Assembly: GCA_965202585.1 (NCBI GenBank)
Contig: OZ241831.1
Span: 17,112,001 to 17,176,000, forward strand
Source of the DNA: Thalia democratica
Taxonomy: Eukaryota
Reading direction: 5' to 3'
Length of the DNA: 64,000 nucleotides
Shown here: in pieces, positions 9,301 to 37,840 of the stretch
Layout: each line of letters starts with the position of its first letter
How positions within the stretch are numbered: position 1 is the first letter of the stretch
Position numbers and translations under genes: made by a program
The notes under the pieces: generated by a model
Database searches by the model: none
Told to the model about the DNA's origin: nothing
The model's input: only the letters and a program-made list of their open reading frames with translations

Positions 9301-12300
9301 GACAGTGCCAAATAAAACGAACTTTTTTTTAATTTTATGACATACTAAAAAAACAAAAGAAGGTTTTTAAAAGTAACAAAGTTTTTAAGAAAAAAATATG
9401 TAGAAAGTGTCTACATCTAGTTAAAAATTGTTCAAAAAAATGCAACTAGATTATAATTAAACAATATTAGCTATTAAATTTCATTTTCAAGAAAAAACTA
9501 AAAAAACAAACAAATAAATCTTAAACCGCATCCGTCTGATGAGCAAAGGTTATCAGTGATTTCGATAGAAACTTGACCTTCAAACCGCGAAATTTTAGTG
9601 TCGTGCTTGTTTTTTTCAAAAAGTCACCAAGAATCGAATTCTAAAATCCAGTTGAAAAAAAAAACTCAGCTAGTTTTGCTTTTAATTCTCACTTTACTTT
9701 TCTCTTAAATTTAACTCGACGATGGTTTCGCACAACCCTCTCCTTTTGTATTTTGCAGCTAATTCTAAATCAATTTTAGTCTCGTGTAATGTGACGTCAT
9801 AGCACGCGAGAACCTTCTGCTCAGCAAGTTTGCTTGTTTTCTGCATTTCAATTGGCCTTCGCGTTTCGCCCCCCGCCAACTTTTGATTGTTTTTTTCTGC
9901 GACTTTGTTTGATGAATTGTTCTAGCTGCTAAAAATCTTGCTCAAAACGCATCTCTCGACCCTTAAGGCTGATGTATTTACATCAGCTGCATAGTTTGTA
10001 CGTAAACTGTCGCTAGTTTTATGTTTGAACTGCATCAAGATCATTAGCGTGCTGTTGAGTTCGACATAGTTACCACATTTTTTTATCACAGGTTTGCGTG
10101 TTCGTCTACCCAGCTCCCTACCGGCTAAAGACGTTTCTCGGAACGGTTCATCTGGCCATTGCCGAGATGCGAAGATCGTGCAACAGCAGCAGCGTGTCGC
10201 TGTCATCCTATTACAAGGTAAATTTGACCTTAAAATTTATATTGCGCTCATTTTAAACGCTGCTGAAATCGCTAAATGCCAACGCTTTGTTTGTTTTCGA
10301 TGTTTTTCGTAGCATCATGCAGTGTTTACGTGGTGCTACGATGGTAGTGTTTTTTTTTACTTTTATATTTGTGTTTTGAGAAAATTGTTTTCGAAAATAG
10401 AGTCGAAACTTTGCAAATGTTTCAAGGTAAGTCGAGTTTGCAATTTTTAAGGCTATGATGGTTTTACCATTGTAGCAATGAACCGCGAAATGTCTTCCGT
10501 GACGCACTTTAGCTTCTGTTTGAAACAAAAACAAGTTTGTTTAGAACTGAAAATCATTTATAATTCATAGAAACAAAAACAAACTTCCAATTCTTAACCT
10601 GTTTATATCTAAAACTGATATTTTTCCAGATATTTCCTACGTCGTCGTTCGTGGCCGGATGCCCAGTGATCGGAGCGACGCACCACTGCGTCAACAGGTG
10701 TCGTCACGGCAACAGCAGGAACCCCCTCGACGAGATGTGCGAGCGGGCGAGAGCCAACCAGGTGGTCGCGTTTAAAGTCAACAACAGCGGCGGGCAGAAG
10801 AAGCTGAAAATATCAAAACTGGCCGGTGCTTCAGCTTCCATACCGGAGGAAGCGCGACCCAGGTGCAACACGAGCAGCGAGAAGCCGACCAACTTCCGCC
10901 CCAACCCGAAGCAAATCACCAAGTCGCATTCGCTTCGGGCACTCGTGTCTGCACTGACCCACCGCAAGCGTCACGCCTTGGCAAAGTCTAAAGCGTACCA
11001 AACTCCCGCGAGCTCTCCGCCCCGAACGCAGACGACCAAGCTGGAGTCGGAAGTGTCGCTGGATAACGGGTACGGCAGCAGCAGCGGCGACAGCTGTAGC
11101 AGGACGTCGGAATCGAAGTTCAGCGACCGGCAGCAGCATTCCTTCAACGAGTCGATCCGAGGGCCGCTGTGTTACCGCCAAAGCGAACCTTCCTTCACGG
11201 CTTCCGTGACGACGACCAACTCCAGTTGCTTGGTGGCGCAGACTTCGATCGACAGCACGAGGTCATACGCCGACTCCACGACTACGAACTCAGGGGAAAC
11301 GAGCGAAAGGACCTCTTCGGCGAGCCAGTGCATATGCGGAACGGAGTACTGTTCCACGATCGACCGCAGCACCATGTCGGCTTCGACCGGAGCGATCAGC
11401 GCCAACGAAACCACTCCAAGGCCGCGACGAAAAGTCAACACGGAAATCACGGCAAGCGCGAAGGTGAAGTCGATGCAGAACATCGTGAGCTCGATGAAAA
11501 ACATCGTGTACAGCGTGCGAGTGCGCGCCAAGATAAACAGCAGGACGAGAGAAGCGCGCATGGCGAAGAGAAAGAACATTTTTCCCACCAGACCGACCAC
11601 TTCCGTGCCTCCCAACTTGCGCAGCTTCTCGCTCGGCCCTCTCATAGACGGCAGCGAGGACGGGTTCGACGTCAAAGACAACGTCTTCGAGATTCTCAAC
11701 TCGGCGAGTAAAATTCGTTCCGGTGGAGTCGTCAAGAAAAATTCAGAGAGCGGAAGCAGCTTTTCTTCTCCGCTCACCTCCACGGAGAGGGACGTGTCTG
11801 AGGCGCCCGCTTCCTCCAAGACCTCTCCTCCGCAGAGCTTCGACGAGGGAAAAGGTTCCTCTGAAGACGGAATCACGTTTTCTCTTACAGAACAAAGCGA
11901 CTCGAAGAAAACAGCAAGTTGGAATTGCGAGGACTGTATGCTCGCCAGCTTGGCTGATAAATCTGAGCTAAAAGCGACAACGAGTCTAAAAAAAAATGAG
12001 CAGAACTTGAGTCAGCGAAGCAAACTCGTGAGACAAAACTGCTTCCGAAGTTCGGACGACATAAGAAAAGAAAAAAGCAAAGCTGCGAGCAAAGACGCGA
12101 AAGTTTTAAAACTCCGCCAGAAGCACAAACTGACCAAGCTGAAACCGGTGGTCGACGATGACATTGCTCCGTACATCGAAGACGGAATTCCGCCGCGAAA
12201 ATCGCTGGAAGTTCAAACGACGACGGAGGACGAGTCAGAGGACTTCCACAGCTGCGCCGGCGGAGACTTGTACGTTTCAGACATGATTTCTCTCTCATCT

Positions 12301-12354
12301 TCGTTTCACAGCCTGAACTGCTTTGTCAGCGGCGAGGATGTTTGCGTGCGATAA
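6345..12354 (+). CDS. Divergent RIM (RIMS/unc-10 family) C2B-domain protein with a long Ser/Thr-rich C-terminal tail, about 794 aa from the ATG at 6345
   Basis: Exons 6345-6554, 8431-8548, 8788-8993, 10092-10217, 10630-12354; all introns GT-AG with consistent phases (0,1,0,0). The spliced protein reads FVEPLGHSQVVDRQSLASLPVGFVKLAI..LTSKP..IKGYL..LLFD..ILQVCVF..KTFLG..YYKIFPTSS, matching RIM C2B as recalled (FLDGLGPAQLVGRQTLATPPMGDVHIAI..LTPKP..IKVYL..LLFD..VLQVIVW..KCFMG..WYKLFPTSS). The true 5' end is uncertain: an in-frame acceptor at 6307-6308 allows an upstream exon. Confidence 0.8.
7964..8018 (+). ncRNA. Minimal type I hammerhead ribozyme motif (Penelope-type) within an intron of the RIM-like gene
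   Basis: gatttatttaag-ca-CTGACGA-ggtc-ttt-gacc-GAAAC-ata-GTT-tttaaataaatt. Core intact, 4-bp stem II, 2-bp stem III, 12-bp stem I with a 2-nt register defect next to the core; AATAAA motifs in and just after the 3' strand. Confidence 0.7.
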
Positions 12355-22170: not shown

Positions 22171-22234
22171 TTAAACTCTAAATTTTAACACGAGATTCTG
22201 AAGTTTTCAATAAAATCAAAACGCGAATGTGAGA

Positions 22235-24154
22235 ATGGAAAACAAAAAGTACATCAGCTCCAAGCAGCTCTACCTGGGCGACATCGTGGACAGCGTCAGG
22301 ATGATGCACCTGCAGCAGCAGAAGCCGCACGTTCCAAACAGACCGCGCCTCGCCCTTACCTACAATCCCGGCTACGAGGGCTTCGTCGGCAAATCGGGCG
22401 AGGCGAAGAACTACCTGCGGCCCAACAGAAAGGTGTGGGACAAGAGCGGGCTGCCCGCTGCTGGCAGAGTTGAAATTAGAGCGAACGGCAGCGTGAAAAA
22501 GTGCTTCGCCAAGGACAACAAGGAAATCAATGAAAAGTTGCAGCCCGGCTACATGGTAGACCGCAGCTCGTGCCCAGAGTCAAGGAGAGGCGTCAGGCAT
22601 GGGAAACTGCGCGACTGCTACCGAAACAACTGCGACGTGATTGTTCCTAATGTTAAAACTAGGTGGCAAACCGAAAGGGAAAACTTCCTTTCAAAAGTGA
22701 ACGGCTGTCCCTTCAACAAGCGACCTGTTGGAAAGTCTGTAATGAAGGACGAAATAAAGGGGTGGGAAAAACCTCGCGCTGGCAAAGCGTTTGAGAGCCC
22801 GGGAGACGGGTACGGAATCGTGCAGCCGAACATCCCGGCGTTGCAAGTCGAAGAAAACGGAAGGATCAATCACGACCAGTACGTCTTCACCCACAACAGC
22901 TACGAGCCGGGTGAGAAGAAGAACCGCAACTACGAGTGGAACGGCGAGAACAAGTTCACCAAGACGATGGGCCGGGAAACTAACGCCGGGATGGACAGCC
23001 ACCACGTGAAGAAAATCCTGGAGTGGGAGCACGACGCGCCCGCCAACCCCACCAACAAGGTCGTGTCGCTCGCCTACCAAAACCGTCAGGACTTGTTCAA
23101 GCACAAGCTGGGAAAAGTTCGCGACCCGAACGTCCAGTTGCGACTGCAAACGCTCAACCCGGACCACAGGTTTGGCCTGAAGGAAGCGCCGCAGGGCCAC
23201 GGCGCATTCGAGTGCATGTACGGTCGCAACCCCAGCGACACTTTGCACGGGGAAGAAAAGCTGCAGGGGCTGGCCGCGAAGGCGAGGTGGCACATCAAGC
23301 GGGCCAACCATTACAACTTTGAGCGAGTTGAAGACGCGTTTGATAACTTCGATCGTGACCGAAAAGGCTACCTAACCGCCGACGACGTCCAGAAAGCGTG
23401 CTGGAGATTCGACATACCGTTGGACGGAAAAGTCTTGCGAGAATTAATGAAGATCTGCTGGCTCGAGTATGGTCAGGATCCTTCGGAATTCGACATCAAC
23501 ACTGCGACCTTGGACGTTGAAAAGTTCATGAGAAAGTTGACCATTCACGACTTCCACCAGGACCACTGCAATTGGGAGACTTTCGGCGCGGTCGCCAACG
23601 ACTACCTGGTGAAGATGGGCGACTACAACAGGCTGATGCTCTGCCAGAAGGAGCTGGTGCGCTGCCCGAACCCGACCCAGCACCTGACGACCAGCTCCGA
23701 AGTCGGCGCCGGCTACCCGCAGTGGAAGGAAAGCTTTATGTGGCACAGCCACGGGGTGCCGTCGAAGCGCACGGACTTGGCCGAGCCGAGGTACGTGTCG
23801 GTGTCGGACGGCCTCGACTACGGCGACAGGAACATCTACGAGATAATGCGACCGTCGGTGTTCCATCGGTGCGGTGTGTACGAGCGCGACCTGATGGAGC
23901 TGAGGGGGAAGGCGGTGTGCAAGCGCCTCATGTGCCGCTTCGGCCCCAAAATCGCCGAGGCGACCTTTGAAAAGATGTGGCCGCTGGCGGTGAAAATGAG
24001 CAACCCGGAAAGGGGCGGAGCTGGGGAGAAAGCTTCCGTTCAGGCGTGTCAGATGATTCTGAGAAATTTGGCCAGAAAAGTGCCGCTTGACAACCCTGCT
24101 GATCTGAGAGTGACGAAAAATGTTGCTGAAAAACGCAGCGAGCTTGTAATATAA
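22235..24154 (+). CDS. EFHB: EF-hand domain-containing family member B (CFAP21, ciliary microtubule inner protein), single exon
   Basis: Uninterrupted GC-rich ORF, first ATG at 22235 (the ORF track starts at GTG 22229). EF-hand FDRDRKGYLTADDV; C-terminal HGVPSKRTDLAEPRYVSVSDGLDYGD..RPSVFHRCGVYERD matches the EFHB C-terminus (YGVPTIRSDIPAPRIRRISDRTNYGEE..YPTIFARKGVFERD). AATAAA at 24187-24192. Confidence 0.92.
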   Translation: MENKKYISSKQLYLGDIVDSVRMMHLQQQKPHVPNRPRLALTYNPGYEGFVGKSGEAKNYLRPNRKVWDKSGLPAAGRVEIRANGSVKKCFAKDNKEINEKLQPGYMVDRSSCPESRRGVRHGKLRDCYRNNCDVIVPNVKTRWQTERENFLSKVNGCPFNKRPVGKSVMKDEIKGWEKPRAGKAFESPGDGYGIVQPNIPALQVEENGRINHDQYVFTHNSYEPGEKKNRNYEWNGENKFTKTMGRETNAGMDSHHVKKILEWEHDAPANPTNKVVSLAYQNRQDLFKHKLGKVRDPNVQLRLQTLNPDHRFGLKEAPQGHGAFECMYGRNPSDTLHGEEKLQGLAAKARWHIKRANHYNFERVEDAFDNFDRDRKGYLTADDVQKACWRFDIPLDGKVLRELMKICWLEYGQDPSEFDINTATLDVEKFMRKLTIHDFHQDHCNWETFGAVANDYLVKMGDYNRLMLCQKELVRCPNPTQHLTTSSEVGAGYPQWKESFMWHSHGVPSKRTDLAEPRYVSVSDGLDYGDRNIYEIMRPSVFHRCGVYERDLMELRGKAVCKRLMCRFGPKIAEATFEKMWPLAVKMSNPERGGAGEKASVQACQMILRNLARKVPLDNPADLRVTKNVAEKRSELVI

Positions 24155-26315: not shown

Positions 26316-28565
26316 ATTCAACCTATACTCCCATTCTTCAAATTTGGTTTAAAATATGTTTTTCTCATTAAGTTATCTCAGTATGATAATGTTATTTACA
26401 AATTGTATCAAGACCTCAGGGTTTAACAAACATCTTCCTTTTACTTTATTTTCTGATGAATTTTCTTTTTAAAACTTAAAGGTAAACAGATAGGTGTATT
26501 CGCTGATCAATTAAAAATAACTGTTTGTTAGTTGCAGTGGTAATTGATGATTGTTCAAGCTTTTGTTGTTGACGAACGTACTAAATCAAGTTAATAAAAC
26601 ACATACTATATTATTTTAAGTAAATTTAAATTAACGCTTTCTTTGAAAACATAATTAAGATTTACAACTTCATTCAATAGATCAAACATTTTATTTGTGT
26701 TTATTAACGAAAATCACTTTAATATAATTTTTTAATAAATTTCTTCAATAGTCTTATTCATAGCAGCCTAAAATTTTTTTTACAAGATTTCTTATCAGTT
26801 TTCATTAGTTTTTTATTAAGAGTGGTTTGCTATGTGTTTAAATATATTTTGTAAATTTAAACTAAGACTTAATGTCTCTTTTAATGCTTGTTTTGATTTT
26901 CAGATATTTATTATAGCTGAAAATCTCAATTAACTTATTATTTAACTTAAACATTGTTTATAAAAAAATTGTTATCTGCAACACATATTACATAGCAAAA
27001 ACATTAGCACTAATTTTTACGAATATATTCTACAAGTAATGTATATAAACTCTTGTCATACTCACTTTAGATATATTTTGAATGTTTTTTGTTAAATAAA
27101 AAAATTGATACAACCTAAAAAATCAAATTTTTGATCTAAGTGTGACATTTTTAAGTGTGCAAAGTTACAACTTAAAAAAAGTACTAACCCTCAAAGAAAT
27201 GCTAAATCACTAATAATTAATTTTATAAAAATAGTTCAGTTGTAGTCGTTAGACACAGAACTAACTACTCCAAATAATCAAAAACTTTGATACGAATTAT
27301 GATAAAAAAAACTTATTATTATTTGTCTATATCAGAGTAGATTATCAATTGTAGATGTAAATTTTAAAACTTTAGCTAATTTAATTTCTGTAACTTACAT
27401 GATTTCTATTTGAAGTTAAAAGATTTTTTTTTCAACTAATATTAAAGTTTGCCCTCTTAAAGCTTGTTAGACTGACTACAATTGTTATTGATCTCATTGA
27501 TATTTAGTTTATAACTGTCTTTTGGTTACATACGAAGTAGAAAGGTAAAGTTTTTTTTTGTAGAATTAAATTTAAGTTAATGGAAATTCGAATTGATATC
27601 TAAAAAATTAACCAGATTTCCGAAATGTTTTTTGGTTTTTTTTCAGGTTTTCTAAATTTATTTCATGTTTTTGAAAGTATAAGTTTTTTGTCCATTTTTG
27701 GTAAAAACTAAATTTAAAGTAAGAAAATGCCTTATTTGTATTAAAATACTGAAAAGATACTGTAAAGTTACAATTGATGTGTTATAAATATAGTAATGAA
27801 AATTCTAAATGATACAAAAAATAAAGTATATGATAGATTTTTCGTATTTTACCAAAATTTCAGGACTTTACATATAAAATTTGCTTTAAATTACAGCATT
27901 TTTAGTGATTTTTGATGAAAATTTCAGGTTTTTTTTTTAATTTCTCAAATTCAAGGTCTTTTGGTACCCCTGATTTACAAGATTTTTAGTGATTTTTGTT
28001 GAAAAATTCAGATTTTTCAAGATTTTTTTTTCTAAATCTAGGTCTTTTGGTAAAATAAATTAAGCAATAAAATTTAAGCCAAATAAATCTCACATTTACA
28101 TTATTTATCACTTTATAAAGTTTATTTTGCTTTTTAACAGTTTAATTTTAATTTAAAAACAATTTTTAGAACAATATTTATTAGCGAAAGCTTTTATCTA
28201 TTTACTATAGTAGCTTAAACTTTGGTCGTTAATAAGGCAAACTGGGTTACTTATTAATCTAACTTAATAGCAGCAAAAATTTTAAATAACTAAACACTTT
28301 GCACAAAACTTTAAAAGACATTAGTGGCATTATGAAATTAATCTATATTTCTCAAGTTTTATTTTTCTAACTAGAAACTTTTACGCTGGCAAATATTCTA
28401 TGTGCCATTTTTATTAAAAGCAATTTCATCTTAAAAAACACCCAATTAAAAAAACTTTACTGCTTTAAACAACATTATATTAAATTAAACAACGCAACCA
28501 AAATGATCTTAATGAAAAAACGAAGAAGAAAAAACACTTATCACTCATTTATTTTTTTATCTAAT

Positions 28566-31500
28566 TTATCGCACTTCTCCGTCCTCTTTCTCTCTGCTTT
28601 GTTCTTCATTCAGCTTTTTTCTCGCATAAGCTCTGGATAAGTTTTATTTTTAAGTTTAAATACTTTATGGTTTCAAATACATTAGTACAATAGGCTATTT
28701 AATAAATAGAATTTAAACTATTTTAGTTTAAATTTAAATACATTTTTTACTACTATATTAGTTGATTTTAAAAAAATTTTTATTTGATTTATCAAAAAAA
28801 ATTTAGATGAGAAACAGATAGAAAACTTATATATAAAGTTTTATCTAAGTAAAAACACATAACATTAGTCAATAAAAAAATAATAAAACAAATTTCATTT
28901 AGTTAAAAAGGGTAGGAAACCTACTGCCCTTGAGATTGACAAGCACGAATATCTGGGAACGGGTCTAAATTGCATGAAGACAAAATTGCACGAGGTTACT
29001 AAATTGCACTAGGGGACTAAAAAGCACGAGAACAAAATTGCACGAGTGAACAAAGCCAAACTTGCACGAGGGAAAAAAATTGCATGAAGACGATTTTGCA
29101 CCAAGGGTCAATTTAGCACGCGAGTAAAAAAATACAGGAAAAAAATGTATATAAAATAAAAACAGAAAAAACTAAAGACAAATCAAAAAAAAATTACTGA
29201 CCGAGGGTAAGGGTAACAGTAATAGTAAAAATAAATATAAAAAATAAATAATAAAAATTATTATCAAAAAAAAAATTAATTAAAAAAAAAGCTACCGACC
29301 GAGGGTAAGGGGTAACAGTGATAGTAAAAAAATTGAGAAAAAAATATAAAAATAAAAAATAAAAATAAAAAGTAACAACTTACCGACCGATGGTAAGGGT
29401 TAGGGGTAACAGTATAAAAAAAAATTAATTAAAAAGAAAAAAAAATTAATACAGAAATTAAAAAATAAATAAATAAAAATTTAACCCGTTCAAAAATGTC
29501 TTTGTGCAATTTTGTCCCCTCGTGAAATTTTGTACGCTCGTGCAAATTAGATAGCTACCCCAAATATCTGGCCCGCGACTTACTTTGTAGGTGTATAAAA
29601 ACAGGTGAACAACAAATAAAACTGTGATTTTTATTTTTTTAATTTGGTCTTTATTCAATTTTCAGTCAACAGTAGTGCTTATTATATGATCACTTCTTAA
29701 CAGTTTCGTTTAAGAAATTTATTTAACTAAAATAAAATAGTTTTCAAAACTTGCGGCCTGCAAAGACTGATGTTTAGAAAGTTCTTCCAGCGAAAAAGTT
29801 TCTACTAAATTTAGGCCGCTGATTATAAAAGTTGCCTACCCTAAATTACTTTAAACATTTGTTTTTTTTTTCTTGGAAATTTAAAATAGAAATATTATTT
29901 ATGCACTGCCTTAACTTTTTAAGTATTTATAAATTTAGGTTTTTAATAAAATTTGACACACTTTGTGTTTAAGTACGAAGAAAGTAATAAAGAATAAAAA
30001 AACATTTTCGAACAATTAATTAAACAACCATAGGATTTGGTTTACTTTAACAATTTTTCCAGAAATAAACCTGTAGAAGCCAGTGACAAATCCATGTCTG
30101 TACCATCTTCTCATCATCTTACTCAAAGTTTCCTTGTTGAAGGTATTGGGACATGTGAGACTTTCAGAACCGGGAAATTCAGGCGCTTGTATTTCTGATG
30201 GTTGAAATTTTAAAAATGTTAACACAAACGAGGTTTCATAAATGTTCTTCTTATACTAAATAACATCCTGATATGAAACAACAACTTATTATTAAACAAA
30301 TAAAACTTAATCTAAATATAAGTAATTTCGAATTTTGTACTTTTAAGATAAAAAACATATTATAGTACTAAGATAAAAGTTAATATGACGAATAACTAAA
30401 CATTAGCGTATTAAAATTTCGAATGAAAATTGTTAAACATTAATATAGGGTTGCCATTTCGGAAGCAAAGAAAAACATCAGAAATAATCTAACATAGCCA
30501 GATTGTACAAGCAAAACTTTAAATAACTAGAAACCAAAAGTTTTTTTTTTGAGCCTTCACAATAAAATATAACTGTATATAAACTAAAATAATAACGTAA
30601 CTTTCTATGAGATGATTAAAATTAATTTATTTGTTAAAAATAATTTAGCCTGAGTTTTTTTTTTTAATTACAGTAACTCTACCCGATAGTTAAAAGGTGT
30701 AATTGGTTTAAAAATGTGAAAAAATAGTTAAATTAAAAGAGTAACATGCTAATCGATTTGTTTATTAAATTTAAAGCTTGATTTCACTTAAGCTTTATAT
30801 ATAAGTATTTTTTAAATTCATACTTCACGCTGATTTGTTTTTTTACTTAAAATGTAGGGCACAGGCTATAATAAACTTTTATTTTTAATTAAATATATAA
30901 AGTTTATAATTTTTGAACTAAAATCCAAAAAGAGTTTTAAATATTTCGTTTGAAAATAATTAAGGTAGAATTTACATTAACAATGAAAAACTTATTCGTA
31001 AACTATGAACTTTTTCTTCTTAACCTTTACTACAGATTTATCTATTCTAAAAATTAACCTAAAGTTTGATAAACTAAAACGTTCACAAATGATATAAAAC
31101 TTGGTTCTAAAAACATCTACGTATAAATAATCCTTTTGTATGTTTATACGAAGAGACCATTTGTTTTGTATTTTATCATCAGCATATGGGAGTGAACGAT
31201 AAATTTTTTATGCAAATTACTTTTCAATAGATTTAGTACAACGCTAAACAACTTAATCTGATGACAACAAAACCAAATACAAACTGACCAGGAAGAATAT
31301 CAGGCTTTTCTGTCAATAACGTATTAACATCCCTATCAAGTTCAGGAGCTTTCGGCGTTTTATGGGAGAATTGGTTCATCATCTCCCGCTTGTTCATGGC
31401 GCATATTGCCAATGCTGACTCAACAGCACGCTTCAACTTCTCAGTTGTTTCCTGGTTTTTATAGTTATTTTCAAGCTTAATTGCTGTTTGAGAATTAAAA

Positions 31501-33995
31501 TTCTCAAGTTAATTTTTTTTAATTATTTTCTTTAATTATTAACATAGTTACATTTTTTTAAATATACTAAACATGAAAAAGTATTTTGCTGTTTTCTTGA
31601 TTATAAAATTTTCAACTATTTTCATTAAAAAACTTTTACCATTAAGAAACTAAGAAAGTAATATTAAAGTAAATTGTTGATATCAAAATTTACTTCGACC
31701 TTTGATAAATTATATTCATTTTTTTTATTGTATATAATAATTGCGAAACATAGATTAGTACAATCTTGGTAGTGAATTTATAAAAACTACATTATACTTT
31801 TAAATAAATTTTCAGCAGCTTCAATATACAACTAAATATCGCTTCAAAACAAGTTCAAAACTTTAAAAATGAGTTTTTGTCAGCTAATTTCTAAACACTT
31901 TCAAGTTTAGAACAAATTTTGAAATGTTTTTTAATAACTTATCTTTCAAACTACATTAACCCCGAAGGCCCATGTTTCAATCAATAAACGTTTTTAAATA
32001 AAATATTCAAAATGCGCAGTCTTCGTTTTTCTAAATTTACCAAGTAAAAAATTTTTTTTTCAATATAAAGTAGTTGTCAAAATTATAAAAATGACTATAA
32101 AAAATGTTGTGCAAAACTAAAAGTTAAATAATGAAACATATACGGACTCTAAAGTTACAATGGTAAGATCATGAATGGTTAATAGAATCATAAACCAATA
32201 GATTTATCTAACTACAGCATTGAATTAGTTTTTTTGATAAATCAAATATGATAACCATAGCTAAAATATTATGTTTAAAAATAAAAACAGATTTTGGATT
32301 AACAGATCATAAGAGATTTAAGGCCATGGGCGGGTAAATAACTTTATTTATTTAGTATTAATTTTACATTAGAAACTAAGCTACCAGTTGTATTTACAGT
32401 TTTTACTTTAACTCAAAGGAATTTTTGAGATATAAGCAATAAAAGTTAGAGAGTTCAATAGGATATATACAGAACGCACAAACTAAAATGCCAAAATAAA
32501 GCATTTAAAATAATCTATCTTCTCCTAGAGTTTTTGAGCAACTGATTTTAAACTGTCTCAAACTAATTTTTTATAAATTATAATAGCATTTGTAGTAAAC
32601 TTTTTTTCTACAACTTGTGTTTATATAGAATTTTAAAATCTTGAAAGTTGCTTAAAAATGTAGGAGGTGTAGACTATTAGTAAACTTTTCAAATACATTA
32701 GTAAATGAGCCATAAAAAATGTCTACGTTATACATTAGTATCAGAAAGTTTTTTAAAAACTGATTATAAAATCAAAAATTGTTTTTTTTTTTTACTTATT
32801 AGTACTACCTTATAATGTATACTTTAAGTTTTAAAAAAAGAATCAATGTTAACTTCTGTAAAACAATGTGACCACCCTCTTTGAGATTTAATATATAACA
32901 CAAATTTTACTGTGTAGTAAATGTAAAACTACAAAAAAAAATCATTACATAAAAATATTTAAAATAAGTAAAAGATTCATACCTGTAGCAAATTTAGCTC
33001 TACATTTTAACAAAGCATTAGAGGTTTAATATTTACAAAATAAAAAGATCAAACAACTACCACTAAAAAAAAAATAGTAAAAACTAACTTCAAAATTTTC
33101 TGTACAATGTTTAATGTAAAACTTTAATCAAATTAATTGAATATGTAATACTCGTTTCATTAATTGCAATTATGTACCTTGTTGTAGCATTGCTGATTTT
33201 GGCCGCTTTCAGATTTTTCTTCTGGCTCCTTTTTCCTTCTCTTTTGCTCTGGACTCCTCGACCTAGACGTGCGCCTATCGTATCTTGAAGGAGCAGGCCT
33301 TATTATTTTACTGCAATTTTATTACTCACTATTCAATTAACTTATTCTTTTTTCTTTTACTTTTTTACTCTACTAGCTACTTTTATGGTACTTTTCTTGT
33401 AAAGTATTTTATCCAATAGGATATTCTATAAATATGTTGCTTTCTTGTTGTACTCGTTTTACTTTGGGAGTATGTTAAAATAATATTTATTTAAAGACGC
33501 TTGTCAAAAAAAAACTAAACACTAACTTTAGTTTTCAAACATTTAACCCCAAATCAAAGGACGCACAATATCAAGAAAGAAAATTAAATTTAAGTTAAAT
33601 TATTAAAAAATGAAGAAATTAAACTACAAAATAATTGCATTGTATTTCAAAAAAAAAGTGATATTTATGAGTATAATAAATATACAAACTCTTATGACTA
33701 ATAAAATTTTTTTTTTAAACTTATGAATATTCTTGATGCAATCAATTAAAATTTGTTCATTACAATATTACGCAGAAAAAAACTGACAATTTCATAAAAA
33801 ACAAGCAACATGTTAAACTTGATAGGAATTAAAAATCTAATCTGAAGGGTAAATAAGCAAAACTTTCAATATCAACCTGTCATCATGACTGCGATGGTGG
33901 TGCGAAGAGTCCGAATATCTTTCATGTCCGTACGGATGGTAATTTCTATCATCGTACACACGGGGCGGGTTGTATCGGTGGTGAGGATACGACAT
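28566..33995 (-). CDS. Uncharacterised 221-aa protein: His/Arg/Ser-rich N-terminus, helical middle, C-terminal SMN-like YG-box and EDGEV tail
   Basis: Exons (minus) 33995-33877, 33310-33178, 33099-33089, 32999-32983, 31483-31289, 30194-30071, 28632-28566; all GT-AG with closing phases (2,0,2,1,1,2), 666 nt in total. The C-terminus reads CPNTFNKETLSKMMRRWYRHGFVTGFYRAYARKKLNEEQSREKEDGEVR*. Confidence 0.78.
28955..29560. mobile_element. Non-autonomous MULE/Mutator-type element (same family as 25688-26315), in the last intron of the SMN-like gene
   Basis: TIRs gggaacgggtctaaattgca / tgcaaattagatagctaccc; near-perfect 9-bp TSD cgaatatct/caaatatct; ttgcacga repeats and three accgaccgagggtaagggt units. 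Confidence 0.75.
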
Positions 33996-35209: not shown

Positions 35210-37840
35210 TTAGTCTTTATCAATTTCCACTTTATTAAGAGAAAATAATTCACTTTCATTCAAAACAGTTTTACTAGAAGTTTTAGCATCCACTTTAGAA
35301 ACGTTTTCTTCAACTGAAACTTCTTGTTGTGTCTGCATTGTTGGTAAGTTTGCTGGGTTAGAAGTATCTTCTTCAGATAGTTGATTAACTTTTTCGTTTA
35401 TGATTAGGTTGTTTTCAGATACATACATAACATCTTTTTCAAGTAATGCATTCAGCTGAAATAAAGATTGGTCTTCTTTTGTTTGATCAGTAGTTTTTAA
35501 TTCTTTACTATTATTTTCAAAGTTTTTTTCAATACTGCTTTCTTGGATAATATTTTCTTTCTTATTAGTATCAGAATCAATCTTAACATCATTTTTATCA
35601 ACTTTATTTGTCTGAATTTCTGTGGTTAAAGGCTCAAGATTAGATGGATGATCATTAGTTTGACTTATAATTTTTAAAGATACAGCATCAACATTTTTAT
35701 TAATAGAATCAACTATATTATTTCTTATTTCTTTAGATTCATTTTCATCAGGCATAGTTGTGTTTTTACTATCACTTTGGTTTATTTTGTTTTTATTGGT
35801 GCTCATTGAATCACATTTTGACTGATCACTGCTGGCCTCATTTAAAACAGTAGAAGAAAGATTATCTGTTTTCTGTTCTTCACCATTTAAACTTTTTGAT
35901 TCATTTAAACACTGGTCACTTTCTTTATCAGAATTATTACCATTTGTACTTGTTTCTAATAGATTGTCAAGTAATTTTTGAGATTCTTTATTTAAATTAT
36001 CGGAAACAAGCTCAAAGTTGTTTTCTTGTTTGCAGTCTTCATTAGTTAAAGATTTTGTTATATCATCTGTAAGTAAGCTGTTTAAATAAGAATCAGGTAT
36101 GTCACCTTTTGATGAGGCATCATTTAAAATTTCAAGATCTTCACTAAAAACCAACTGCTGTTGGACAATAGAAGAAGGTGAAATAGATTTAATTCTATCA
36201 ATAAGGCATTCAACACTAATTACTGGAAATTTTTCCACATTTGATGAGAAAGCTGATGGACCAAAAGCAACATTTAAATTATCATTTGAAAACATAACTT
36301 GTAAACAATCATTTATGTGAGGTATAGCTGTATAAATAAAAGACTTACATAAGCTGTCAAAGTTTTTCTTTTCAGTTTTACTAAAAGCAGCACTTTCAGC
36401 TGAATGGAATGTGACTAAAATATCAGCTGCTTTACTGAAAGCAGCAGATAAATTGATAAAAAGCCATTGAGCAATTGAAACAGGGCAACAAGATCTCACT
36501 TGGTTTAGCATAGATAATATTCCATTAACAAGCACACATAAAGGCTGGTGCTGGAGTAAATTTACTGGTGGAAGAGGAGTTTTAGTTGTACTACTTGGAG
36601 TTACAGATGTTGATTGGTTGTGTGATACAGATGCCATTAGAGAATGTGACATCATCAAGGATTCAAAACTATTTACTGTTGATTTGAGCTCCTCCGCAAG
36701 TATTTTTTCAGTAGTTTCAATAAAAACATTAGCTATTAGGCTCCTAAAGTCTGCTCCAACTTTGCTAAAAGACTGGCCAAAATACATGACTGGTCGTAGA
36801 ATTGAGTCCAATCTGCTTGGAATAAGAGGTAAATACTTTTTAAGTTCCTTAATAAACACAGAAACCCTGTATGTTATCCAACTTGAAAATATTGCAGAAC
36901 TTTTTGGTTTTCCATCTGCTGATTCTTCCAAATGGTATGAGTAATCAAACGGACTACTAAAAGTTGTGTCATCCATGAAGATAGCTCTATATTGAGTAAC
37001 TATACTGAACAAATTGACTCTATATACTTCTAGCAACTGGCTAAGGTAATCATGGACCTGATTTTCATCATGTGATTTTCCTTCTTTGAGAAAAGGCAAC
37101 TTACTTTCAAACCAAGAATTTCTGACCTGTAAAAATTTGAATCTTAACTCAATCTCACTGAAGCATTCAAGTCTCCGTACATATCCAATAATTTTTAGAC
37201 AAACTGGAAGCTGCAAAGAAGTTTTAAGCTGAGCTAAAAGCTGCTCAAGCATCAAAACAGTTGAGTTTTTAACATCATCTATAATACCAGCTATTACTGG
37301 TATTTCAGCTATATGTTGTTTTTTGCTCAAACGTTTTACATAAAAAACAAGCTCAAGGGCATCTTCATAGTACTGGTTTCTAACACATGTATTCATTAAT
37401 TGTGGAATTTCTAATATTTCAAGAAGCTCTGTGTTTTTCTGGAGAGTCAAAGATGTGCACCTTCTTACATTACCAATTTTACTGACCTGTTTAAGAAAGC
37501 TTTGTCCATGATCTGAAAGCTGTGGTAAGGTGCTGATCATGTTGTCAAGTTTCTCCTCAATCACACTAAAATCTTTAACTATTCCTTTAGAACAGTCTGC
37601 AGTACTAATAAAAGTTTTATAGTTGTGAAAAGCTAAATCTCTAGTCTGCTGTAACAATGAAACTTTCTTTTCTTCAAGCCTTTCTGGCTCTTTGTTTAAT
37701 GTATCAAGGTCAGAACCACAAAGGTGAGAAATATAAGGTAAGAAATAAGGGCTTTTCATTTTATCATCTGCAAGATCATCAGTAAATATTGATGCAAATA
37801 TGGCTTCATCTTCAACATTAAAACTTTTGCAACTGTCCAT
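35210..37840 (-). CDS. COG8: Conserved oligomeric Golgi complex subunit 8 (Dor1 family), single coding exon with a long acidic low-complexity C-terminal extension
   Basis: 876-aa ORF with COG8 motifs LNKEPERLEE..LAFHNYKTFI, LLEILEIPQLMNTCVRNQYYEDALEL, LPVCLKIIGYVRRL, RVNLFSIVTQYRAIF and MYFGQSFSKVGADFR. 3' acceptor ttttttacag at 37857-37858, 16 nt before the ATG. Confidence 0.95.
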   Translation of the reverse strand: MDSCKSFNVEDEAIFASIFTDDLADDKMKSPYFLPYISHLCGSDLDTLNKEPERLEEKKVSLLQQTRDLAFHNYKTFISTADCSKGIVKDFSVIEEKLDNMISTLPQLSDHGQSFLKQVSKIGNVRRCTSLTLQKNTELLEILEIPQLMNTCVRNQYYEDALELVFYVKRLSKKQHIAEIPVIAGIIDDVKNSTVLMLEQLLAQLKTSLQLPVCLKIIGYVRRLECFSEIELRFKFLQVRNSWFESKLPFLKEGKSHDENQVHDYLSQLLEVYRVNLFSIVTQYRAIFMDDTTFSSPFDYSYHLEESADGKPKSSAIFSSWITYRVSVFIKELKKYLPLIPSRLDSILRPVMYFGQSFSKVGADFRSLIANVFIETTEKILAEELKSTVNSFESLMMSHSLMASVSHNQSTSVTPSSTTKTPLPPVNLLQHQPLCVLVNGILSMLNQVRSCCPVSIAQWLFINLSAAFSKAADILVTFHSAESAAFSKTEKKNFDSLCKSFIYTAIPHINDCLQVMFSNDNLNVAFGPSAFSSNVEKFPVISVECLIDRIKSISPSSIVQQQLVFSEDLEILNDASSKGDIPDSYLNSLLTDDITKSLTNEDCKQENNFELVSDNLNKESQKLLDNLLETSTNGNNSDKESDQCLNESKSLNGEEQKTDNLSSTVLNEASSDQSKCDSMSTNKNKINQSDSKNTTMPDENESKEIRNNIVDSINKNVDAVSLKIISQTNDHPSNLEPLTTEIQTNKVDKNDVKIDSDTNKKENIIQESSIEKNFENNSKELKTTDQTKEDQSLFQLNALLEKDVMYVSENNLIINEKVNQLSEEDTSNPANLPTMQTQQEVSVEENVSKVDAKTSSKTVLNESELFSLNKVEIDKD

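Follow-up and report, generated by a model that had tools for sequence, protein, structure and literature searches.

A Tudor-less gene next to COG8 in Thalia democratica encodes a putative paralog of the SMN C-terminus

Gene structure and splicing

The window, which is the whole 64,000-nucleotide stretch of Thalia democratica contig OZ241831.1 analysed here, carries on its minus strand a gene of five exons encoding a protein of 197–201 aa (~23.5 kDa, pI ~9.3), with a COG8 gene as its immediate neighbour (Table 1). Exons 4 and 5 are each flanked by AG acceptor or GT donor signals as applicable, judged from splice-site context, and when joined they read ...CPNTFNKETLSKMMRRWYRHGFVTGFYR|AYARKKLNEEQSREKEDGEVR-stop. 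This is the YG-box peptide that had been described in an earlier note on this DNA, and the exon coordinates given for it were exact.

Table 1. Features of the window, with positions counted from its first letter.
Feature	Position	Strand	Description
COG8/Dor1 gene	35210..37840	-	Single exon; upstream same-strand neighbour; Pfam Dor1, 1.8e-93
Exon 1	33877..33995	-	Start codon and His/Tyr-rich N-terminus; 39 codons + 2 nt; predicted
Exon 2	33178..33310	-	Basic RS/Lys-rich segment (SRYDRRTSRSRSPEQKRRKKE); 94% identity in contig L017
Exon 3	31289..31451	-	Conserved blocks a (KLKRAVESALAI) and b (PELDRDV...PDILP), predicted helical; ends fixed by contig L015
Exon 4	30071..30194	-	Bulk of the YG-box domain: CPNTF (30153) through GFVTGFY + 2 nt of an Arg codon
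Intron 4 insert	~28970..29600		Repeat-rich
Exon 5, coding part	28566..28632	-	Rest of R278, A279, basic/acidic tail to EDGEVR, stop
Probable 3′ UTR	28186..28565	-	L015 collinear with window 28641–28186, 90% identity
EFHB-like EF-hand protein	22229..24154	+	Intronless ORF, 641 aa
Ser-rich protein	10651..12354	+	Intronless ORF, 567 aa; no Pfam match

The exon boundaries are supported by two related environmental contigs. Contig L015 (991 nt, JGI environmental sample) derives from a close relative (90–97% identical to the window) and encodes the 99-aa protein P0003. It joins 33178/31451, 31289/30194 and 30071/28632 exactly. Because L015 is collinear with the window only across blocks 33446–33177, 31457–31289, 30195–30071 and 28641–28186, introns 2, 3 and 4 are spliced out precisely where predicted; L015 still contains the 3′ end of intron 1. 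The 30071/28632 junction, whose use in cDNA the earlier note had made a condition, is thus the one used in a spliced sequence, and the intronless paralogs described below read straight and collinearly across its equivalent (...TGYYRAISRKKL...). An alternative acceptor for exon 3 at 31475 is ruled out by L015, which places the acceptor at 31451. The previously given length of 221 aa has to be corrected to 197–201 aa.

Exon 1 and the acceptor of exon 2 were predicted from splice-site context and comparison. The related Tara Oceans contig L017 preserves the ATG and the GT donor of exon 1 and also its reading frame, apart from a single in-frame indel of 6 nt, and a further family member, P0006, likewise has a His-rich N-terminus. 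The acceptor of exon 2 lies at 33310 or 33298, and the frame is the same with either. Blocks a and b of exon 3 can be aligned with the paralogs. The dN/dS of the window gene is 0.08 against L015 and 0.28 against L017, which shows purifying selection.

A rare family linked to COG8

Among 1.84 billion representative proteins, a profile search returned only four matches, all from marine environmental assemblies and none of them named, and a homology search with the C8 paralog as query found two close relatives only. A pattern scan of metagenome contigs gave 206 pattern matches, none of which was confirmed. When the family profile was run in six frames against the whole ~802-Mb genome, it recovered just two family members, the window gene and, on C8, a GC-rich copy that lacks introns, and the next match was the YG-box of the organism's canonical SMN.

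The family falls into two subfamilies. The COG8-linked subfamily comprises the window gene, P0003, P0004 and P0006 (224 aa, intronless, His-rich start), and the GC-rich intronless subfamily, with a longer RS/Lys-rich N-terminus, comprises the copy at C8:34.62 Mb (L004), P0001 and P0009. All share the invariant core L-x-K-M-x-R-R-W-[YH]-R-x-G-x-x-T-G-[YF]-Y-R. The terminal EDGEV, which the earlier note had likened to motifs of RNA-processing factors, is present in the window protein and is limited to close orthologs, with no conservation across the family.

COG8 followed directly by the YG-box gene on the same strand is found in three organisms (window, L017 and L012/L013). Between the window and L012, the COG8 proteins are 62% identical and the YG proteins 36% identical over 77 residues. 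The closest COG8 clusters are mostly chordate, and the cellulose synthase family PF03552, used as a marker of tunicates, gave no match. Judged from the sequences at hand, this is a rare, lineage-restricted and unannotated family of SMN C-terminus paralogs, in which a known module appears in a new architecture.

Canonical SMN and other YG-box genes of the genome

The genome has separate canonical SMN genes. Two genes carrying both Tudor domain and YG-box lie in tandem on C1 (L002 at 54.670 Mb and L003 at 54.692 Mb), ~21 kb apart and ~34% identical. P0011 is a full-length canonical product of 487 aa with an SMN_Tudor domain, an RS-rich linker and a YG-box. Residues ~88–150 of P0011, which precede the Pfam Tudor domain, also have a Tudor-like look on visual inspection (WVAGEKCMADYDG...); Pfam recognises a single Tudor domain in the protein. 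Gemin2 is also encoded in the genome, on C5 at ~26.90 Mb.

A GC-rich intronless ORF of 116 aa, L001 (C8:34516705-34516827; ORF L001:1288-1638, plus strand), consists of an SMN C-terminus only. It has the best YG-box score of the genome (34 bits; ...LMVSWYMCGYHTGYY), its s-motif residues are small, and the distance to L004 is ~106 kb. L001 may represent a third kind of Tudor-less YG-box gene. Together with L002, L003, L004 and the window gene, the genome therefore holds at least five YG-box genes. Smn is reported to be a single gene in most eukaryotes, and the YG-box has been called a signature of SMN orthologs (PMC8287954).

Homology of the C-terminal domain to SMN

Against the Pfam SMN_YG-box model (PF20635), the window protein scores 14.9–16.3 bits (E 0.009–0.02; exon 4 alone, 14.9 bits), which does not reach the gathering cut-off of 21.3 bits. 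Among 24,736 Pfam families, SMN_YG-box nevertheless ranks first for the ortholog P0003, and it does so too for the C-terminal peptide and for exon 4 taken alone; it is the family matched by most members (5 of 7, E ~0.01) and the sole YG-related Pfam match. For scale, YG-boxes are short, and even the canonical SMN of this organism scores no more than 26.8 bits with the same model and 22.8 bits against the human 4GLI chain.

Comparison with SMN of the same lineage gave much stronger signals. BLASTP of the window protein against the organism's own SMN (P0011/P0012) scored 42–50 bits with 46% identity over 46 aa, and the similarity reaches upstream of the zipper. The YG part aligned to the same SMN gave z = 18–22 in 2000 shuffles, and hhalign of the family against the lineage SMNs gave 94% probability (E 1.5e-7, 31 columns). 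Since the BLASTP, shuffle, hhalign and reciprocal genome-wide results agree, we conclude from sequence comparison that the YG-box of the window protein is homologous to that of SMN. Its significance rests on comparison within the lineage, the generic Pfam model staying under its cut-off. The homologous stretch spans ~31–46 residues, and convergence on a short motif keeps a small residual probability.

Structure-based searches were less informative. A PDB search with the family profile returned only Snt309 (E 0.11); the ortholog compared with the solved SMN YG-box structure 7BB3 gave a non-significant E of 1.3, with chance uL30 matches ranked higher; and a search of the ESM Atlas yielded no usable match. 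Neither Pfam nor the PDB profile search matched the window protein to any other known family. The profile comparison proposed earlier divides, falling short with Pfam (16.3 against 21.3 bits) and succeeding with hhalign against lineage SMN. The proposal of a divergent SMN paralog or new YG-zipper protein gains support from the significant similarity of the C-terminus to the organism's own SMN YG-box.

Residues of the YG-box

In human numbering, checked against the 4GLI sequence and the numbering of PMC8287954, the window protein keeps L260, M263, W267, Y268, G271, T274, G275 and Y277, as had been noticed from the sequence. The Phe residues at 272 and 276 and the Ala at 279, listed before as deviations from human SMN, also hold in this check, and all three are present in the organism's own SMN. 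At every zipper-face position (M264, W267, Y268, G271, F272, G275, F276 and A279, together with M263) the window protein and its SMN are identical. Like that SMN, it contains the three (Y/F)xxG repeats with interdigitated Y- and G-motifs (Y268–G271, F272–G275 and F276–A279), following the definition of the YG-box in PMC8287954 and PMC4969610.

The family-specific changes relative to the organism's SMN are N262K, V265R, S266R and Q269R. Plotted on a helical wheel, these four positions occupy 120–220 degrees, facing away from the zipper, and the resulting basic stripe of K262, R265, R266 and R269 is invariant across the family. The replacement of the small residues S262 and S266 by Lys and Arg, reported from the sequence alone, is thus confirmed. 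All family members have an Arg at 266, which breaks the s-motif defined by small residues at 266, 270 and 274; residue 270 is a His in the window protein, with Ser or Ala elsewhere in the family, and T274 is kept. In SMN, S266, S270 and T274 sit opposite the dimer interface, and bulky substitutions at the yeast equivalents (spS130Q, spA134Q and spT138I) abolish higher-order oligomers and growth (PMC8287954). The YG-box is also used for Gemin3 and Gemin8 binding (PMC8287954).

Intron 4 splits the codon equivalent to residue 278 after its second base. Human exons 6 and 7 meet immediately ahead of residue 279 (PMC4969610), so that the two positions are within 1 nt of each other. As a sign of descent from SMN the shared position would be only suggestive. 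The reason is the intron phase, which in the human exon 7 sequence differs from that of the window gene.

Domains lacking and the N-terminal half

No exon of the window gene and no family member matches the Tudor models (PF06003 and PF00567), and the Tudor matches of the genome lie at other loci. The absence of a Tudor domain, noted from the sequence, is borne out by these searches.

The Gemin2-binding domain is likewise undetected. No family member matches PF20636 in Pfam, hhalign gave no N-terminal match, and shuffles against the SMN N-terminus gave z ~0, in line with the earlier remark that no such motif is recognisable. This absence is less secure than that of the Tudor domain because PF20636 also misses the organism's canonical SMN. 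By eye, block a resembles the Gemin2-binding helix (...AYDKAV...), and this candidate was dropped after the Pfam, hhalign and shuffle tests gave nothing.

Two likenesses to other parts of SMN were seen. Exon 3 shares with the SMN N-terminus a motif of the form K-x-P-E-L/M-D ... P-D, and the His/RS part aligns collinearly with the RS-rich linker of SMN (YSD...SRYD...R-x-RSPE...KKE; z ~3, p ~0.01). They conflict, because the domain orders that they imply differ. The linker similarity would weakly fit an origin by partial duplication, involving the 3′ half of SMN.

The N-terminal half, His/Tyr-rich and then RS/Lys-rich, is probably disordered and resembles the region of an SR protein or a nuclear localisation signal. 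In an AF2 model of the conserved part of the C8 paralog, blocks a and b come out as helices, as does the YG region, at a low confidence (mean pLDDT 56) that is too weak for a fold search. The middle of the protein is accordingly modelled as two helical blocks specific to the family.

Comparison with known systems

Canonical SMN (human SMN1; P0011) resembles the window protein in its C-terminal YG-box, with M263, W267, Y268, G271, T274, G275 and Y277, and in the RS-rich region upstream of it. The window protein differs in its size (~200 aa vs. 294–487 aa), in the lack of a Tudor domain and of a detectable Gemin2-binding helix, in its own predicted helical blocks a and b, and in its linkage to COG8. 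Relative to the SMN of the same organism, the s-motif residue 266 is Arg, and the stripe K262, R265, R266 and R269 stands in place of N, V, S and Q.

SMNDC1/SPF30 is, like the window protein, an SMN paralog, and it has links to splicing factors. SPF30 keeps the Tudor domain and has no YG-box, the reverse of the layout found here. SR-related proteins share with the window protein a short RS/Lys-rich basic segment upstream of an interaction module, whereas the window protein has no RRM, no family match and an RS stretch of ~20 aa (longer in the C8 paralog). Another small natural protein with a YG-box and no Tudor domain is fission-yeast Smn1 (PDB 4RG5 and 7BB3), which forms mainly dimers (PMC8287954). 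Smn1 differs in being the sole, essential SMN ortholog, with the Gemin2-binding domain and small s-motif residues kept; the window protein exists beside full SMN genes.

Proposed function

The reading that we favour, with a probability of roughly 60%, is a functional five-exon gene for a ~200-aa, SMN-derived YG-zipper paralog that lacks a Tudor domain and dimerises. Direct backing comes from the gene structure, the splicing of introns 2–4, conservation, purifying selection, the YG-box homology and the lack of a detectable Tudor domain. From there we infer dimerisation, loss of higher-order assembly, a nuclear or RS-type function and any contact with SMN.

In the proposed mechanism, the YG-box would form a glycine-zipper helix dimer as in SMN, and the face opposite the zipper would have been remade as the basic stripe K262, R265, R266 and R269. 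R266, at an s-motif position, would hamper the assembly of dimers into dimers of dimers. The protein would then pair with itself, or possibly with SMN, and not build polymers of the SMN kind, an expectation derived from the intact zipper combined with R266 at a position where bulky substitution abolishes the higher-order oligomers of SMN. The predicted loss of higher-order assembly hangs mainly on R266, because position 270 is not uniformly bulky in the family (His, Ser or Ala). The basic surface and the RS-like tail would be available for contact with RNA, or with partners that are acidic or phosphorylated.

The strongest competitor, which we regard as possible though clearly behind the favoured reading, is an independent homodimeric nuclear factor of the RNA-binding or SR-like type, in which the SMN-derived zipper serves as a dimerisation device with no functional tie to SMN or snRNP assembly. 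It would account for blocks a and b and the basic stripe, all of which SMN lacks, for rapid evolution outside the zipper (36% identity vs. 62% for COG8), and for a conserved linkage to COG8 and not to SMN. Nothing speaks directly against such a factor, but a fully conserved zipper face would permit mixed dimers.

Mixed dimers are the basis of a narrower form of the favoured reading, which we hold to be tentative and slightly less probable than the independent factor. Here the protein modulates the SMN complex: it would heterodimerise with canonical SMN through the zipper and either cap SMN oligomers, its s-motif face being closed off by Arg, or anchor an RS-like domain on the machinery of snRNP assembly. 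The identical zipper-face residues of the two proteins, the presence and conservation of both genes in the same organism, and the s-motif logic of PMC8287954 are all consistent with this modulator. The RS-rich linker of the organism's SMN, with its weak collinear likeness to the His/RS part (z ~3, p ~0.01), points the same way. Heterodimerisation is nonetheless argued from sequence: a complex prediction with SMN residues 425–487 and ortholog residues 36–99 scored 0.18, which is no verdict either way, the Gemin2-binding domain is undetected in the protein and its family, and capping does not need a basic stripe on both partners.

Convergence or chance, in which an amphipathic helix with aromatic-xx-Gly repeats arose separately from SMN, is improbable. 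A sub-threshold Pfam score, the lack of a significant match to the SMN chains of the PDB, and the shortness of the motif would fit it; the hhalign E of 1.5e-7, the shuffle z of 18–22, similarity extending upstream of the zipper, SMN itself as the next genome-wide match of the family profile, and an intron no more than 1 nt away from where human exons 6 and 7 meet argue against it. A decaying partial duplicate of SMN (a pseudogene or non-functional ORF) would explain why the C-terminal module alone is retained and fits a search for RNA runs of the species that found none, but it is already disfavoured, and very improbable, given the dN/dS of 0.08–0.28, the intact frame and splice sites in two relatives (L015 and L017), the existence of a spliced transcript-type contig (L015), and family and synteny conserved at 36% identity.

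The favoured dimerising paralog can be extended to the whole set of YG-box genes, though we consider the extension speculative and rather unlikely. From the SMN oligomerisation module the lineage would have built up a small YG-box family that might comprise two Tudor-bearing SMNs, the 116-aa mini-SMN and two RS-type proteins. The RS-type proteins would be natural chain terminators or adaptors on SMN, pairing with it by way of the unaltered zipper face, blocking higher-order polymerisation through their Arg-lined s-face and perhaps recruiting RNA or SR-type partners. If true, the lineage would have an inbuilt control over the size of SMN condensates, of a kind not known from any model organism.

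Keeping the zipper face while turning the higher-order assembly face to arginines would amount to a natural experiment on whether dimers or polymers matter, a question that comes from research on spinal muscular atrophy, and the family could supply a ready-made dimer-only or capping YG-box. The case also shows how duplication can put a short oligomerisation helix to another use, and that paralogs carrying the SMN YG-box slip below standard Pfam thresholds. Overall, the locus is of moderate interest for SMN biology, and beyond homology the functional statements made here are proposals.

Further features of the window

The COG8 gene has a ~400-aa low-complexity tail rich in Asn, Ser and Lys, and a gap of ~1.2 kb separates it from the YG-box gene. 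The insert in intron 4 has inverted terminal segments (CACGAG...CAAAATTG motifs) around tandem TTACCC(T)TACCCTCGGTCGGTA-like units, and looks like a MITE or other transposon relic. The two plus-strand ORFs of Table 1 are GC-rich (about 50–60%) with sharp edges, in surrounding DNA of ~25% GC, and the C8 paralog of the window gene shows the same pattern of composition.
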